A stretch of 45,149 nucleotides of DNA from Guillardia theta CCMP2712 (taxonomy: Eukaryota; Protista; Cryptophyta): the NCBI RefSeq assembly GCF_000315625.1, contig NW_005434548.1, positions 49,696-94,844 on the forward strand, given 5' to 3'. Positions 9,538-45,149 of this stretch are shown one piece after another. The notes below the pieces were generated by a model, which saw only the letters and a program-made list of their open reading frames with translations, was not told the DNA's origin and searched no databases. The position numbers were made by a program, and so were the translations under genes. Position 1 is the first letter of the stretch. Every line of letters starts with the position of its first letter.

Positions 9538-12103
9538 TCACGAAGTGATCTCCTTTCCCAGCTCGACATCTGAACAGAACCCGGAAGCGTCAGTCACGTG
9601 ACCTGCACGTTGTCGCTCCGTCAAGCTTCTCACCTTGCACCCCCTCGTTGGACACCGTCTTGGGCCCCTTCTGCTCCTCCTCCTTCTCTTCCTGCCTGCT
9701 CTGACCCCTGCTGTGTGAGGGCAAGCTTGTCAGCTGCTGCTGCTGAGAAGGAGGAGGAGGAGGTGATGGTGGTGGTGTAGAGGAGGAAGTGTAGAGCAGG
9801 CAGAGTAGAGGAGGTGGAGGTGGAGAAGATGGAGGATGAGAGGTGGTGGTGGTGGTGGTGGTGGTGCAGGTGGTGGTGGAAGAGGAGCAGGAAGTTGTTA
9901 TACCGGGCCCAGCGCACCGCCAGGAAGGTCAAGCAGAGGACGACGAAGGCGATCAAGAATCCGAAACCAACCCAGGCAGCAGCTGAGATTTTCCTCTTGG
10001 ACTTGTCCGGCTCGTAGAGGTCAGCTGGGGTGTAGCTGACGACCCAGCGGGAGAAGTGATCGGTCTCGACGGAGATGGTGGAGCCATAGACTTTGGAACC
10101 TTTCTGAGAGAATAGGAGTGAGGAGAGGAGGATGAGGAGAAGGAGATGGAGGAGGCGGTGGTGGTGGTGGTGACGGAGTAGGAGTAGGAGTAGGAGTAGG
10201 AGTAGGAGTAGGAGTAGGAGTAGGAGGATAGAGAAGATGGAAGAGGAGGAGAAGGAGTAGGAGGAGGAGGAGGAGGTGGTGGTGGTGGAGGAGGAGGATG
10301 AAGAGGAGGTGGTGGTAGTAGTGAACGGGGAGGAAGAGCATTCAAGTACCTGCTCCTTCCATGTCCTAGTAGCATCGTCGAAGTAGAGCACTTGGAGCTG
10401 GATCGATTTCCCTTGCAGCATCTCGGGGGGAAAAGCGAAGGTGAAGTTGAGGGTGACAGGCTTGAGGAAGCGAGCACCATGGGGGGAGAGTTCGAACAGC
10501 TGCGAGCATGGGGTGCCTTGTGTCTTCCTGCTGAGAAGATAAGGAAGGAGGAGGAGGAGGAGAAGAAGAAGGAGGAGAAGGAGGAGCAGGAGCAGGAGAA
10601 GGAGACAGAGGAGGAGAAGCAGGAGGAGGAGGAGGAGGAGGAGGAGGAGGAACAACGATGTTGGTGCGATGAAGTAAGGCAGCAGCAGTAGCAGTAGCAG
10701 TAGCAGTAGCAGCAGCGCCAACAACATTGACAAGAGAAGGAGGAAGAGGAGGAAGAGAGGGAGGGAGAGAGCAATCTCGTCAACCTGTCCTCTGCTGGAA
10801 CGCTATCGAGCGTGAAGGCCTCGAGCATGATGGTCTCTTGGGAGGACAGCGCGTTGGGAGGGATGACTATCCACTGATGATCCCGAAGAGACACCTGCAG
10901 AAGGCAGTAAATCGAAAGGACCTCCTCCTCCTCCTCCTCCTCCTCTCCCTCCCTCCCTCCCTCCTCTCCCCTCCTCTCCTTTCGTCTCGTCTCATGTCTC
11001 TCTCCTCCTCTCCTCTCCTCTCCCCTGCTGCCACTACCTTTCCGCCCGCGGAGCCTACAACGGCGGAGGAGGCGATGGAAGGCTTGAGGGCAACTTCACA
11101 CTTGGACCCGAAACGACGAGGGAGGCAGGAACATGTTCCCTCCTCTCCCTGCCAGCCTGTCGGCAGGCAAGACTGACAGCTGTCTCAGTAGAGGCTAGGA
11201 AGATGAAGGAGGGTGGAGGTAGATGAGGAGGAGGCAGGCGGGAGGACGAGGAAGAAAGGAGGCGGAGGAGGAAAGGGAAAACATGAAGATGTCAGCAGTG
11301 AGGAGAGAGGAAGAGATGAGATGAGATGAGATGAGATGAGATGGGATGGGATGGGATGAGATGAGATGAGATGAGATGAGATGAGATGAGAGGAGATGAG
11401 AGGAGCAAACAAGCAGCATACCCTGACACTTCCAGTCCTCCGCATGAACTCGTTCTCACACAGTAACAGGCACTTCTCTCCATCCTCTTTCTTCTGCGTG
11501 TGGCAGCTGGACGGGACGTACGACCCCATGGGCTGCTTCGGGAGTGGCAGACAGGAAGCAGGGACGTGCTCGCATCTGTCTCCTGCTCGAGGGGAGGGGC
11601 AGGAGCAGGTGAAACCTTTGCGAGCTCCTGTGTTGACACAAGTGCCTCCGTGCGAGCAGGGGTTGGGGAGACAAGGATGGCAGAAGAAACCTGAGAGGAC
11701 GAAGACAAGTGAGATGGTGATGGTGGTGACGAGGATCAAGATGATGATGATGAGGAGGAGGATCAAGAAGAGGAGGAGGTGGTGGTGGAGATGAAGGTGG
11801 AGGAGTAGAGGAGGAGACAGAGTAGAGCAGCAGAGGAGCAGAGGAGGAGGAGGAGGAGGAGGAGGAGGAGGAGGAAAGGGGGAGGGGGGGGGGAGGCTAA
11901 CCGGCCATGACAAGAAGGTCCTTGTTGACATTCTCACAGTCTAACCTGCATTTGACAAAGAGAAAGACAGAAGTCAAGAGAACAAAATCATCAATGAGAT
12001 GTAGAGGTAGAGAAGATGGCAGAACCGAGCATTAGAAACAACACGATAAAAACAACCAAAAATATAACACCTCATCGTCATCGTCATTGTCTTCTTCATC
12101 ATC

Positions 12104-12139
<36 letters not shown>

Positions 12140-15100
12140 GTCGTCGTCGTCGTCGTCATCGTCATCATCATCATAACCCTAGCATCTTTCAGACTCATCC
12201 TCTCAGTCTCTCAACCTGTCCGGACAGGCCTCAGCTTCCTTGTCCGTCCAGTTTGCCGGGTTCTCCCCGACCCGCAGGCCCTCGAGCCCGGGAGTCCGAG
12301 CAAAAAGAGCAGAGCAGTTCTTTCCGTAGGAGTGAAAGATAACCATCCTCTCGTTGTAGTTCGTCATGTGAGCTGAGAAATCTGGCCGCTCTCCTACATC
12401 CACCCTTCTTCCCGTACCTGGGATCCCCACCTGATCCCTCACCTGGCACGTGAGGTTCCGAGTCCCCCAACAGCTCTCCCCCGGTGTCGTGCAGGCCAGG
12501 TTCAGCTGGGCAGGAGCTGGAGGAAGAGGTTGTTCGTCTTCCTTGCAGGCATCGTCCACCTGGATGTAGTTGACTTCCTTCGTCAGCGCGTTGACGAACC
12601 AGAGCCGGCAGGAGGCATCTTGCCCGCTGCTGCACTGGAGCTCAAGGCCGGTCACTCCAGCTGACCCCGTGCTGAACTCCCCAGGGTCTTCCCAGCTCGG
12701 TCGAAGGCGACGATCCTCCCCGTGTCATAGTCCGAGACGAAGAGGCGACCCTGAGGCGAGAGCGCGAGGCCTGAGGGAGACTGAAGGGAGGAGGTGAAGA
12801 CCTGGGTCACCTGGTAAGAAACGCTCCCTGTCGACCTCTCCTCTCCCCTCCTGCTCTTGCTCTCCCCTGCCCTGCCCTGCCCTGCCCTGCCCTGCCCTGC
12901 CCTGCCCTGCCCTGCCCTGCCCTGCCCTGCCCTCTTCTCCTCTCCTCCTCACCTCACCTCACTCTCCTCCCCTCCCCTCCCCTCCCCTCTTCCCCCCTCC
13001 TCTCCTTACCTCAAACTCGGTGCATCCCCACAGCTCGTACTCGAACGAGTCGCTCGTCTCCGTGAAGGTCGTGTAGCAGCCCAGCCCGTCCTCCATGGCG
13101 CACGGCCCTCCCCGACACCATCCTGATGACGTCATCGGACCAAGACGGGAGAGCAAAAGACGAAGACGAGGAGGGAGGAAGCAGAGGAGGAGGAGGAGGA
13201 GGAGGAGGAGAGGTAGATGAGACAGCAGAGGAGGATTAGTTGGAAGAAGCAAATACAGGATACAGAGAGCGTTCCAGTGAGTAAGGGACGGGGACGGCCA
13301 GGAGGAGGTGGTGCTGCAGGAGGAGGAGCAGAACAAGGAGCAGAGCGAGGAGGAGGAGGGAGGAGGAGAAGGTGCTGCAGCAGCTGCTGCAGGAGGAGGA
13401 GGAGGAGGAGGAGGGCGGATCGCTCTGCTTCTTACCAGCCTCGCAGTTCATGTTGCAGATGTCTGGTCGGCATCCCGTGGCTGTTCCTCCACAAGTGTCG
13501 CTGGACTGACCCTCACAGAATTGCTCGCATTGCGACCTGAAGCACGAGAGTGAGAGAGTGAGAGTGAGAGTGAGAGTGAGAGGGAGGGAGGGAGGGAGGA
13601 AGGGAGGGAGGGAGGGAGGGAAGGTGAGAGGGAGAGAGTAGGGAAGGGCGAGGAGAGAACAAGGGAGGGAAGAGAGAAGGAGTGACATGCAAACGAGAAG
13701 AAGAGAGGGAGTAGACGAAGGAAGAGGGGTAGAGGGTAGAGGAAGGAGGAGGGGTAGGTTCAGCATGTCTAGCACTTGTTCTGGTAGGTAGTCGATCTAT
13801 TTGTGCCGCATGTCCATCTGGAGTTGTGATTCCAGAAACATTCGTCCGGCACACACATCGCTCCTCGAAAGAACTTCCCGCTGTCCGCGTTCACCCGCAG
13901 CACCCGCTTCCCACCTGTTTCCCCCTCCCCACCGTTAGAAGCTGCGCAGGCTCAACGGACCTCCTTGTTCTCGTCCTCGCATGATTTCTCCCTTCCTCTC
14001 GCCACCACCACCACCACCACCACCACCTCCTCCTCCTCCTCCTCCTCCCCCTCCTCACCAGTGTCAGCAACGTAGACATGCCGCGCCTCCGCGTCGACCA
14101 CTATGTGGCCGGGGACGTCTGAGCAAAGAGGTGAGGGGAGGAGGAGGAGGAGGAGGAGGAGGAGGAGGAGGAGGAGAAGGAGGAGGTCTCGGCGAGTACC
14201 GGCGCGACGGCTGATGTCAACATCGACGTACCGACGGATGTTGGCGAAGCGATGATCCATGACCTTGACACCATGCAGAGAGTCCTACATGCCACTTGCT
14301 GTCAGTCTCGCCCTCTTGTCCAAGTTTGACATCCTCTTTGTCAAACTTTCACATCCTCGTCAGTTCTCACTTACCATGTCAAATCGCATTAACTTGCCCC
14401 TCACGCCGTCCACATACCAGACGATGTTCCCTGGGACTCTACTTCTGTTCTGTACGGGAACGTTGAGGCGTGTTGGTCCTGTTGTGGCCTGAAGAGCTCA
14501 AGTCAGAGAGGGCAGGAAGACGTAGAAGATTGAGGGTTGACAAGTGCAACAAACTCGAGCACAAGCTGCGTCAGGCTCTACCTTGCTGTCATGGGCGATG
14601 CCAGTGCATAGAGGAGACTCGTGAAGCATGTCGGAGTGGATGACGAAGCACTGGGACGCCCCCTCGGAGCCAGGAGTGCAGTGGCTGCCGTCATGCGATA
14701 CCATTTGGTTGTCGCAGCCTCCTCCTTCCTTCATCTTGCCATAGCCCCCCTCGCAAGGATAGACTTCGAATGCGCTCGGGCCCTGGAAGTAGTTGGGCCC
14801 CTGCGACCCCGCGTACGTGTTGGTGCTCTCCTGGCAAGTGAAGACAACCTTTCCTTGCTTGTCGAAGGATAGAGCCGCAATATTGTCCATGTAGTGGTAC
14901 GCGGCGCGATCTCGCACTGTGAACGACCTCTGGTCCTTAGTGCCTGCGTTCTCAATGACGAAGAGCCCGCTCGACGTCGCGTCTTTCTTGTCCGCGCTCG
15001 CTACCCAGAGCTCGTTGGGTCTCATAGGATGGAACTGAATGTCTCGGGGGGTAGCGAGGCCTTTCGTGCTGCTCGCTACTGTCACGATCGTTCTTGCGGA

Positions 15101-15217
15101 GCCAAACGGGGGGACGCAAGAGGAACTGGCGCGGGGGAGGGCATGAAGGAGGAGGAGGACGAGAGACAGGACGAGGCTCTCGCGCCATATCTTGCTCGCT
15201 GCGCCCAGGGACAACAT
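9538..15217 (-). CDS. Type I membrane receptor-like protein: signal peptide, NHL/beta-propeller, Cys-rich insert, EGF, CCP/sushi-like, ZU5 with HFS motif, TM helix, short tail
   Basis: N-terminal hydrophobic signal (LVLSLVLLLLHALPRASS). Propeller blades GLATPRDIQFHP..NELWVA, VPGHIVVDAEARHVYVADTGGKRVLRV and LQSPSGLALSPQGRLFVSDY. EGF CLPNPCSHGGTCVNTGARKGFTCSCPSPRAGDRCE (~11570-11680). ZU5 VVGSAGGKVSL..IVIPPNAL...FELSPHGARFLKPVTLNF...VETDHFSRW. TM AWVGFGFLIAFVVLCLTFLAV. Stop at 9538. About 17 exons; one apparent frameshift at ~12680. Confidence 0.8.
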
Positions 15218-37814: not shown

Positions 37815-38663
37815 NNNNNNNNNNNNNNNNNNNNNNNNNNNNNNNNNNNNNNNNNNNNNNNNNNNNNNNNNNNNNNNNNNNNNNNNNNNNNNNNNNNNNN
37901 NNNNNNNNNNNNNNNNNNNNNNNNNNNNNNNNNNNNNNNNNNNNNNNNNNNNNNNNNNNNNNNNNNNNNNNNNNNNNNNNNNNNNNNNNNNNNNNNNNNN
38001 NNNNNNNNNNNNNNNNNNNNNNNNNNNNNNNNNNNNNNNNNNNNNNNNNNNNNNNNNNNNNNNNNNNNNNNNNNNNNNNNNNNNNNNNNNNNNNNNNNNN
38101 NNNNNNNNNNNNNNNNNNNNNNNNNNNNNNNNNNNNNNNNNNNNNNNNNNNNNNNNNNNNNNNNNNNNNNNNNNNNNNNNNNNNNNNNNNNNNNNNNNNN
38201 NNNNNNNNNNNNNNNNNNNNNNNNNNNNNNNNNNNNNNNNNNNNNNNNNNNNNNNNNNNNNNNNNNNNNNNNNNNNNNNNNNNNNNNNNNNNNNNNNNNN
38301 NNNNNNNNNNNNNNNNNNNNNNNNNNNNNNNNNNNNNNNNNNNNNNNNNNNNNNNNNNNNNNNNNNNNNNNNNNNNNNNNNNNNNNNNNNNNNNNNNNNN
38401 NNNNNNNNNNNNNNNNNNNNNNNNNNNNNNNNNNNNNNNNNNNNNNNNNNNNNNNNNNNNNNNNNNNNNNNNNNNNNNNNNNNNNNNNNNNNNNNNNNNN
38501 NNNNNNNNNNNNNNNNNNNNNNNNNNNNNNNNNNNNNNNNNNNNNNNNNNNNNNNNNNNNNNNNNNNNNNNNNNNNNNNNNNNNNNNNNNNNNNNNNNNN
38601 NNNNNNNNNNNNNNNNNNNNNNNNNNNNNNNNNNNNNNNNNNNNNNNNNNNNNNNNNNNNNNN
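37815..38663. other. Assembly gap
   Basis: N run flanked by (GGGA)n repeats. Confidence 1.
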
Positions 38664-38988
38664 GGCCAGGCAGCAAGGAAGGAATGAGTAGGAAGGAAGG
38701 AACGGAGGAAGGGAGGGAGGGAGGGAGGGAGGGAGGGAGGGAGGGAGAAATGGAATTGATCCAACATTGACCGCACTCTGACCCTGAACCCTCAGGCACG
38801 TACTCAGTACGATAGTTGTGGCACTGGACAACATGCAAGGTGCAGGAGTCAGTTTCTGTGCTGATACAGTGTGAGCCAACTGATCTCGAGCAAGAGTAGG
38901 CTCCGTAGGCTACCTCATCAGCCTTCCTGTCTTGATCGATCCTGCAGGTGCACCTTTTTGTTCCCCTAAGAGAGACAGAGCAGTCACC

Positions 38989-45149
<6,161 letters not shown>

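Follow-up and report, generated by a model that had tools for sequence, protein, structure and literature searches.

In the nuclear genome of the cryptophyte alga Guillardia theta CCMP2712, a stretch of 45,149 nucleotides (assembly GCF_000315625.1, contig NW_005434548.1, positions 49,696 to 94,844 of the forward strand; hereafter the window, in whose coordinates all positions are given) carries on its minus strand a gene that probably encodes a type I surface protein with a β-propeller head and a metal-dependent site—its propeller family probably having been exchanged between bacteria and eukaryotes long ago and joined to EGF modules before Guillardia. This single nuclear gene comprises at least 14 exons between positions 15217 and ~9904, and it is present in a single copy in the 87.1-Mb genome (669 contigs). 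The encoded order is a signal peptide, a six-bladed NHL-type propeller with a Cys-rich insert, a conserved linker, an EGF domain, a CCP-like stretch, a ZU5 domain and a transmembrane (TM) helix.

A single gene runs from signal peptide to transmembrane helix

The predicted gene structure rests on splice sites, intron phases and collinearity with homologs. All 13 introns are of the GT-AG type and their phases carry over, with each exon open in the frame dictated by the preceding one; the intron-rich gene implied by an earlier sequence-only reading of the window, made from the letters without database searches, was thereby recovered. Two homologs proved informative in this context. The environmental contig L002 contains no more than two or three introns and aligns collinearly with the window all the way from signal peptide to TM helix; a single 584-amino acid (aa) open reading frame (ORF) therein extends from the last blades through the EGF and ZU5 domains (the latter with an expectation value, E, of 9.9e-07) to the TM helix. 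In P0194, the closest intact homolog, one ORF of 697 aa on a contig of 2.8 kb encodes a signal peptide, a propeller with the same insert, the linker, an EGF domain and a TM helix.

The seven motifs quoted in the sequence-only reading were all found on the minus strand, in exons 1 to 4. Exon 1 (14582–15217, GT donor at 14581–14580) contains the start codon, the signal peptide and blades 1 and 2, together with the motifs PRDIQFHP..NELWVA, RDRAAYHYM (extending to RDRAAYHYMDN), TCQES.N.Y..GPNYFQGPS (with FTCQES.N.Y and NYFQGP within this region) and HSDMLHESPLCTGIAHD; its initial Met coincides with the start of a 96%-identical protein from a close relative. WYVDG..G.LMRFD lies in exon 2 (14375–14488; NIVWYVDGVRGKLMRFDM, blade 3), which is bounded by AG/GT sites in phase 0 and collinear with L002 and P0194. 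Exon 3 (14200–14284; LHGVKVMDHRFANIRRYVDV) holds LHG..DH..IRRYVDV and carries invariant H, DH and R columns, and exon 4 (14059–14118) encodes VPGHIVVD..VYVADTG in blade 4, with VPGHIVVD...VYVADT as its core. The end of blade 4 and the beginning of the Cys-rich insert (CVPDECFWNHNSRWTCG) occupy exon 5 (13776–13914), a segment kept in L002, P0194 and a further homolog, P0038. The insert continues through exon 6 (13436–13536, seven Cys) and ends in exon 7 (13010–13122), where the sequence returns to the propeller (FEYELWGCTEFE) with 62–66% identity to L002 and P0194 in tblastn. Exon 8 (12216–12810) encodes blades 5 and 6, including an NHL repeat, as well as the eukaryote-specific linker module (ERPDF..HSYGKNC..CPD). 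A 49-nt intron inside this exon (12447–12399) was considered and rejected, as it would break a conserved continuous frame.

The propeller and the EGF domain are joined across the next intron. A GT donor at 12215–12214 and an AG acceptor at 11947–11946 connect position 12216 to exon 9 (11902–11945) and yield CPD-R-LDCENVNKDLLVMA, the conserved propeller-to-EGF junction, restoring CPD-R-LDCENVNKDLLVMA-G-FFCHPC—a string that is uninterrupted both in P0194 (CPDRLDCANMNLDLLVMAG; longer stretch, CPDRLDCANMNLDLLVMAGFYCHPC) and in L002. The continuity of the rebuilt junction in both homologs contradicts the possibility, raised in the sequence-only reading as a potential refutation, that the propeller and the EGF-ZU5-TM parts belong to separate genes. 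Between propeller and EGF lies a Cys-containing linker module (ERPDF..HSYGK.C..CPDR.DC; 12216–12440 plus 11902–11945 in the window, residues about 476–580 in P0194), which is confined to the eukaryote-type members of the family, gives no Pfam match and adopts a largely helical structure in the model of P0194, with predicted local distance difference test (pLDDT) values of 66–92.

The domain assignments proposed for the stalk fared differently. The EGF domain was recovered in exon 10 (11422–11690) with Pfam PF00008 (E 3.2e-10, 40.5 bits vs a cutoff of 21.5). None of the window ORF, L002 and the closest homologs, on the other hand, gave a Pfam match to CCP/Sushi (PF00084); only a pattern of four Cys plus GW across exons 10 and 11, split by an intron, recalls a CCP module, with its first part in exon 10 and the remainder (C..GW) in exon 11 (11038–11172), which also holds a short EGF-like Cys stretch. 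The ZU5 domain (PF00791) was supported in the collinear homolog L002 (29.4 bits at the E value given above), while the piece in the window ORF remained below the threshold (E 0.061, 14 bits vs a cutoff of 21); in the window, this domain is divided over three exons and its H-F-S motif is present. Exons 12 (10894–10785) and 13 (about 10530–10350) encode most of it, covering 10350–10894 with the intron included, and exon 14 (9904–10103, resolved as far as 9904) contains the ZU5 end with D-H-F-S-R-W, the TM helix AAAWVGFGFLIAFVVLCLTFLAV and the residues RWA.

The public annotation conceals this complete receptor-like protein, and its gene model can now be corrected. The entry matching the locus at 100% (P0017 in our set; EKX35446.1 / XP_005822426.1, hypothetical protein GUITHDRAFT_118362) is a 512-aa truncated propeller that begins at Met65, and hence has no signal peptide. 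It retains ten intronic residues, passes over most of the second half of exon 5 and with it the conserved beginning of the Cys-rich insert, and ends at an in-frame stop at 12203, with the stalk annotated apart from the propeller. In exon 8, it sidesteps a frame shift by means of a 62-nt 'intron', which we rejected, as a conserved NHL blade segment is lost with it.

The head is a six-bladed NHL-type propeller with near-invariant His and Asp residues

Structural analysis was based on an AlphaFold2 model of P0194, computed with 118 family sequences and used here in place of the window's own spliced protein. The propeller proposed in the sequence-only reading was confirmed as six-bladed and NHL-type, with a predicted template modeling score (pTM) of 0.80, blades at pLDDT >90 and a VIA Z score of ~26. 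Foldseek and VIA searches with this model returned only six-bladed propellers of the NHL, SGL or DFPase type (Z 24–27, ~250–280 residues aligned), and comparisons with the propellers of Thin, TRIM2, Lin41 and PknD-derived structures gave Z scores of 25–27 and a root-mean-square deviation of 2.2–2.6 Å over about 250–260 residues. At the sequence level, Pfam NHL (PF01436) was matched in exon 8 of the window (E 3.7e-06, 27.1 bits vs a cutoff of 20) and in 16 of 50 members of the eukaryote-type clade. The SMP-30/gluconolactonase/LRE family (PF08450) reached only E 0.017 and 15.2 bits in the window (cutoff 26.3), over a single blade. A profile of the family matched PDB entries over the last blades only (NHL-derived Pizza designs, NHLRC2, SOQ1, PknD, the lyase Vgb and LRP6), and a PDB sequence search with exon 1 gave no match even at E 10. 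The motif-rich N-terminal half is covered by no Pfam or NCBIfam model, with only the last blades matching NHL or SGL; NCBIfam offered nothing beyond far sub-threshold matches to ScyE, ScyF and Vgb, and the ESM Atlas returned only clusters labelled 'hypothetical' or 'NHL repeat'.

The Cys-rich insert, assigned by the sequence-only reading to 13010–13540, is real and begins earlier than claimed, in exon 5 at about 13857, spanning into exons 6 and 7. It is lacking in the bacterial and in many eukaryote-type members, and in the P0194 model (residues about 300–378) it is predicted with lower confidence and falls outside the aligned core.

One key observation is that the His and Asp residues flagged from the letters alone are near-invariant across bacteria and eukaryotes—five His and four Asp, plus one Arg. 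In P0194 numbering, D94, H99, H179, D181, H184, D231, H236, D242, H243 and R250 are conserved in ≥90% of the 118 sequences, as are F135, G137, P138, M182, P187 and G191; the window retains every one of these residues. Going by the strand order of the model, the top face over blades 1–3 should accommodate H99, H184 and the N..Y..F.GP loop, and we infer in the same way that D231, H236 and D242/H243 would be placed in a blade-3 loop on the opposite side.

Bacterial relatives are lipoproteins enriched in Myxococcota

Using exon 1 as the query against 1.84 billion proteins, with cluster representatives collected at E≤1e-3, we obtained 330 cluster representatives, as well as a match to a Myxococcota protein with 38% identity (E 1e-30). 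Since exon 1 alone retrieves this many representatives and the Myxococcota match, the seven motifs are far from a chance occurrence. The bacterial members are lipoproteins of 350–450 aa with lipobox N-termini, and at least 592 loci were detected among GTDB species genomes, mostly in Myxococcota: names of this type account for 53 of the best 80 bacterial loci, including Plesiocystis pacifica SIR-1, and 45 of 151 sampled Myxococcota genomes had a match, often with one to three copies each. The membership in an uncharacterised secreted family, suggested in the sequence-only reading for Bacteroidota and Myxococcota, was borne out, the family being abundant in Myxococcota and one long member bearing a type IX secretion system (T9SS) sorting tail typical of Bacteroidota. 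Long members overall displayed the T9SS tail and Big_1, PEGA and YtkA domains, with Cu_bind_like found in 2 and YtkA in 3 of 66; neither of the latter two occurred in the 50 eukaryote-type clade members. A few copper or redox genes (MopE, a multicopper oxidase, a MauG-type peroxidase and AhpC) lie next to bacterial members, too rarely to count. Thioredoxin-like and cupredoxin-like N-terminal regions seemed to be present, by eye, in some eukaryote-type members and were unconfirmed by Pfam in those checked.

The propeller-EGF fusion is shared by a clade of protist proteins

To place the Guillardia protein within the family, 90 propeller cores were analyzed with IQ-TREE under LG+C20+F+G4, excluding fragments that covered less than about three quarters of the domain. 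In the resulting unrooted tree, 44 eukaryote-type sequences form one side of a branch with an SH-like approximate likelihood ratio test (SH-aLRT) support of 100, and the Guillardia sequence is found deep in this side, grouped with P0194 and P0038 (support 98) within an insert-bearing subclade. A FastTree reconstruction with 180 rows agrees; just two 'bacterial' rows fall on the eukaryote-type side, both of them N-truncated fragments mislabelled by the lipobox pattern. A propeller-to-EGF junction of the form CPDR.DC.N.N.DLL.MAG[FY].CH.C.P is common to the eukaryote-type clade, in which Pfam detected EGF in 17 and TSP1 in 9 of 50 members, and none of the bacterial-only domains (T9SS tail, Big_1, PEGA, YtkA). 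Because the join is common to the whole clade of protist proteins, the propeller-EGF fusion predates Guillardia. A chimera specific to Guillardia is contradicted by the tree, by the common junction and by L002, which displays the full propeller-EGF-ZU5-TM layout, and the history proposed in the sequence-only reading is not supported. That reading also held that broad, vertical distribution in eukaryotes with the same architecture would speak against it; this applies in part, as the same architecture does occur in other eukaryotes, though the homologs look patchily distributed there. The data fit one ancient exchange, in either direction, between Myxococcota-like bacteria and eukaryotes.

The named eukaryotic carriers are Guillardia, Hanusia phi and Picozoa sp. 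COSAG01, with most other members coming from environmental samples. One environmental member resides on a 640-kb contig that looks eukaryotic, its neighbours having Pfam matches to ferric reductase, family X DNA polymerase, 60KD_IMP (Oxa1/Alb3) and HECT. A database entry assigned to the Asgard archaea was also encountered (P0218; MGB1594361.1, 'MAG: calcium-binding EGF-like domain-containing protein [Promethearchaeia]'), which shares 98% identity with a section of a eukaryote-type gene split by introns (L002:2650-4401); rather than an archaeal EGF protein, it probably represents eukaryotic sequence whose contig ended up in an Asgard metagenome-assembled genome (MAG) during binning. In four environmental homologs (P0018, P0024, P0022 and P0162), two tandem propeller-linker-EGF units are found per ORF, resembling a repeated or polyprotein-type transcript.

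A one-base frame break in exon 8

The gene has a sole defect. Exon 8 is 595 nt long, the flanking phases require a length of 3n+2, and a one-base frame shift maps to a G-run at 12679–12682, after which the first frame stops at 12654–12652; conserved homology is found on both sides of the break. It may represent either a base-calling error or a recent mutation. In a comparison spanning exon 1 only, the locus was 4.4% diverged from its close environmental relative L005 (93% nucleotide identity), as opposed to 13.5% in the 5' flank; the differing codons comprised 13 synonymous and 7 non-synonymous ones, and the single indel is in frame.

Proposed function and alternative explanations

With moderate confidence, we interpret the head of this receptor-like surface protein as containing a metal-dependent binding or catalytic site. 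The propeller head would be the working part, in which the near-invariant His and Asp residues of blades 1–4, kept from Myxococcota lipoproteins to protists, most likely form a metal-dependent site that could bind or chemically process an extracellular ligand. The stalk (linker, EGF, CCP-like stretch and juxtamembrane ZU5) would keep the head away from the membrane, and the whole would be expressed as one mRNA. The propeller family would have been exchanged once, long ago, between Myxococcota-like bacteria and eukaryotes, in either direction, with the fusion to EGF taking place in an early eukaryotic carrier and not in Guillardia. A bolder version, put forward only tentatively, takes the head as the catalytic or metal-binding part of extracellular proteins that form a class of their own, new to science. 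The head would have crossed a single time between Myxococcota-like bacteria and early protists, later becoming fused to EGF/TSP1 stalks, and its chemistry would be new to NHL propellers; if true, the origin of teneurins would have an independent counterpart outside animals.

Several observations weigh against this interpretation as a whole. The structural matches are generic, with Z scores tied across enzymes and pure binding domains, and the invariant His and Asp may form two patches in the model, one on the top face and one in the bottom loop of blade 3. Gene neighbours in bacteria are not conserved: among 52 on the same strand, each family was represented at most twice. The exon-8 frame break, if real, truncates the protein before the stalk. 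No RNA evidence was found for Guillardia: a word search with the 150-aa exon-8 ORF, intended to pick up transcripts that span the frame break or the join to EGF, came back blank, a result that is uninformative because of its length window. Finally, the tree is unrooted, and the eukaryotic origin of most clade members is deduced from their domains, introns and neighbours.

The main competing explanation takes the propeller for a module of adhesion or ligand binding without catalytic activity, akin to those of TRIM-NHL proteins, YWTD propellers or the teneurin NHL domain, with the His and Asp residues having a structural role or holding a structural ion. We consider this possible, though doubtful. 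The best structural matches do include pure binding propellers (Thin, TRIM2/3/71, Lin41, PknD and LRP6), the partner domains are adhesive (EGF, TSP1 and fasciclin) and the bacterial genes adjoin no conserved enzyme partners; five near-invariant His at about 35% overall identity would, however, be unusual for a purely structural role, and the enzymes PAL and DFPase and the Diels-Alderases score equally well structurally. A different objection concerns the integrity of the locus, which could be a recently inactivated pseudogene whose protein ends after blade 5. The one-base change at 12682–12679 with its downstream stop, together with the blank (and, given its length window, uninformative) transcript search, would be compatible with a real break, yet we judge inactivation unlikely: the remaining exons are open, in phase and conserved, all invariant residues are retained, exon 1 is under constraint relative to the close relative, and a base-calling error in the G-run explains the break equally simply.

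The remaining alternatives bear on the architecture. That the locus consists of two separate genes as publicly annotated—one for a secreted propeller (GUITHDRAFT_118362), the other for an EGF-ZU5-TM protein in its own right—draws on the public model terminating at the in-frame stop at 12203, and we regard it as very unlikely, given that the splice sites rebuild the conserved CPD-R-LDC..DLLVMAG, continuous in P0194 and L002, that the EGF exon lacks both a start codon and a signal peptide, and that the public model also loses the signal peptide and conserved segments. Even more improbable is a scenario along the lines of the sequence-only reading, in which a recent transfer from bacteria to Guillardia was followed by intronisation and shuffling onto a pre-existing stalk of EGF, CCP, ZU5 and TM. 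In its favour, few named eukaryotes carry the family, which abounds in Myxococcota, and the gene is in single copy; nevertheless, the nearest relatives of the Guillardia protein are eukaryote-type sequences with 44–54% identity and the same junction and Cys-rich insert (the bacterial proteins reach only 35–38%), the two groups are split at SH-aLRT 100 and the entire architecture is also present in L002.

Relationship to known propeller proteins

No paper on this gene or family was found in the literature. Among described systems, the peptidyl-alpha-hydroxyglycine alpha-amidating lyase (PAL, PDB 3fvz) is an NHL-type six-bladed propeller as well, and a secretory-pathway enzyme. PAL uses a His-bound zinc. 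It aligned with the P0194 model at a VIA Z score of 25.4 over 271 residues with 10% identity, a resemblance at the fold level only, with Z tied with non-enzymes; no sequence-level match emerged in PDB sequence and profile searches. The last blades of NHLRC2 and SOQ1, which combine a thioredoxin-like domain with an NHL propeller, matched the family by sequence profile (E 6.5e-16 and 2.5e-14, respectively), although Pfam detects no thioredoxin domain in the Guillardia gene or its clade and the cellular compartment differs. The Hedgehog-interacting protein HHIP likewise has a six-bladed propeller from a largely bacterial family, which in HHIP is followed by two EGF domains and a membrane anchor; its propeller, however, belongs to the glucose/sorbosone dehydrogenase family and is not of the NHL type.

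The YWTD propeller-EGF modules of the LDL-receptor family (LRP6, LRP4 and megalin) share the arrangement of a six-bladed propeller followed by EGF in a type I receptor ectodomain, and the family profile matched LRP6 over the last blades (E about 4e-11). They differ in their blade motif and have no counterpart to the motif-rich N-terminal half; in the Guillardia protein, ~100 residues of conserved linker separate propeller and EGF, and LDL-A repeats are lacking.

The nearest described parallel is provided by the teneurins (PMC13018210), in which a bacterial-type six-bladed NHL propeller and EGF repeats are likewise combined in a eukaryotic single-pass membrane protein. In both cases the bacterial relatives are lipoprotein-like and enriched in Myxococcota—more than 20% of Myxococcota species are reported to encode a teneurin-like protein (PMC13018210)—and for both an inter-domain transfer of old date has been proposed. 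The superfold that defines teneurins is missing from the Guillardia gene, which is devoid of the FN-plug, the YD/RHS shell and the toxin domain, with no RHS/YD or FN-plug match in any exon or homolog that would indicate the FN-plug/NHL/YD-shell arrangement. The Pfam TEN_NHL model yielded sub-threshold matches only (E 0.075 in the window; 0.0016–0.006 in homologs). Additionally, teneurins are type II proteins, unlike the type I Guillardia protein, and the carriers here are protists rather than choanozoans or animals. With this gene, a second case becomes known, this time outside animals, in which an NHL propeller of Myxococcota type is combined with EGF modules at the surface of a eukaryotic cell.

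The analysis also defines a sizeable unnamed protein family, comprising the 330 cluster representatives and at least 592 bacterial species loci, with a sharp His/Asp signature that current domain libraries miss. If the site binds metal or is catalytic, culturable myxobacteria such as P. pacifica SIR-1 would offer an easy route to the role of the head in the alga.

Further features of the window

Most introns of the gene (9630–14260) are filled with CTC/CCT/CAC/CAT-type microsatellites; on both strands, these repeats produce long spurious ORFs with a high content of L, S, H or E. Elsewhere in the window, positions 38001–39000 and 42001–43000 have GC fractions of 0.185 and 0.025, respectively, and probably correspond to assembly gaps (N runs) instead of real AT-rich DNA. 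In the sister cryptophyte Hanusia phi, the EukProt entry P0002 runs from exon 1 through an intron-1-like sequence into exon 2, and it looks like a transcript that is unspliced or retains an intron.

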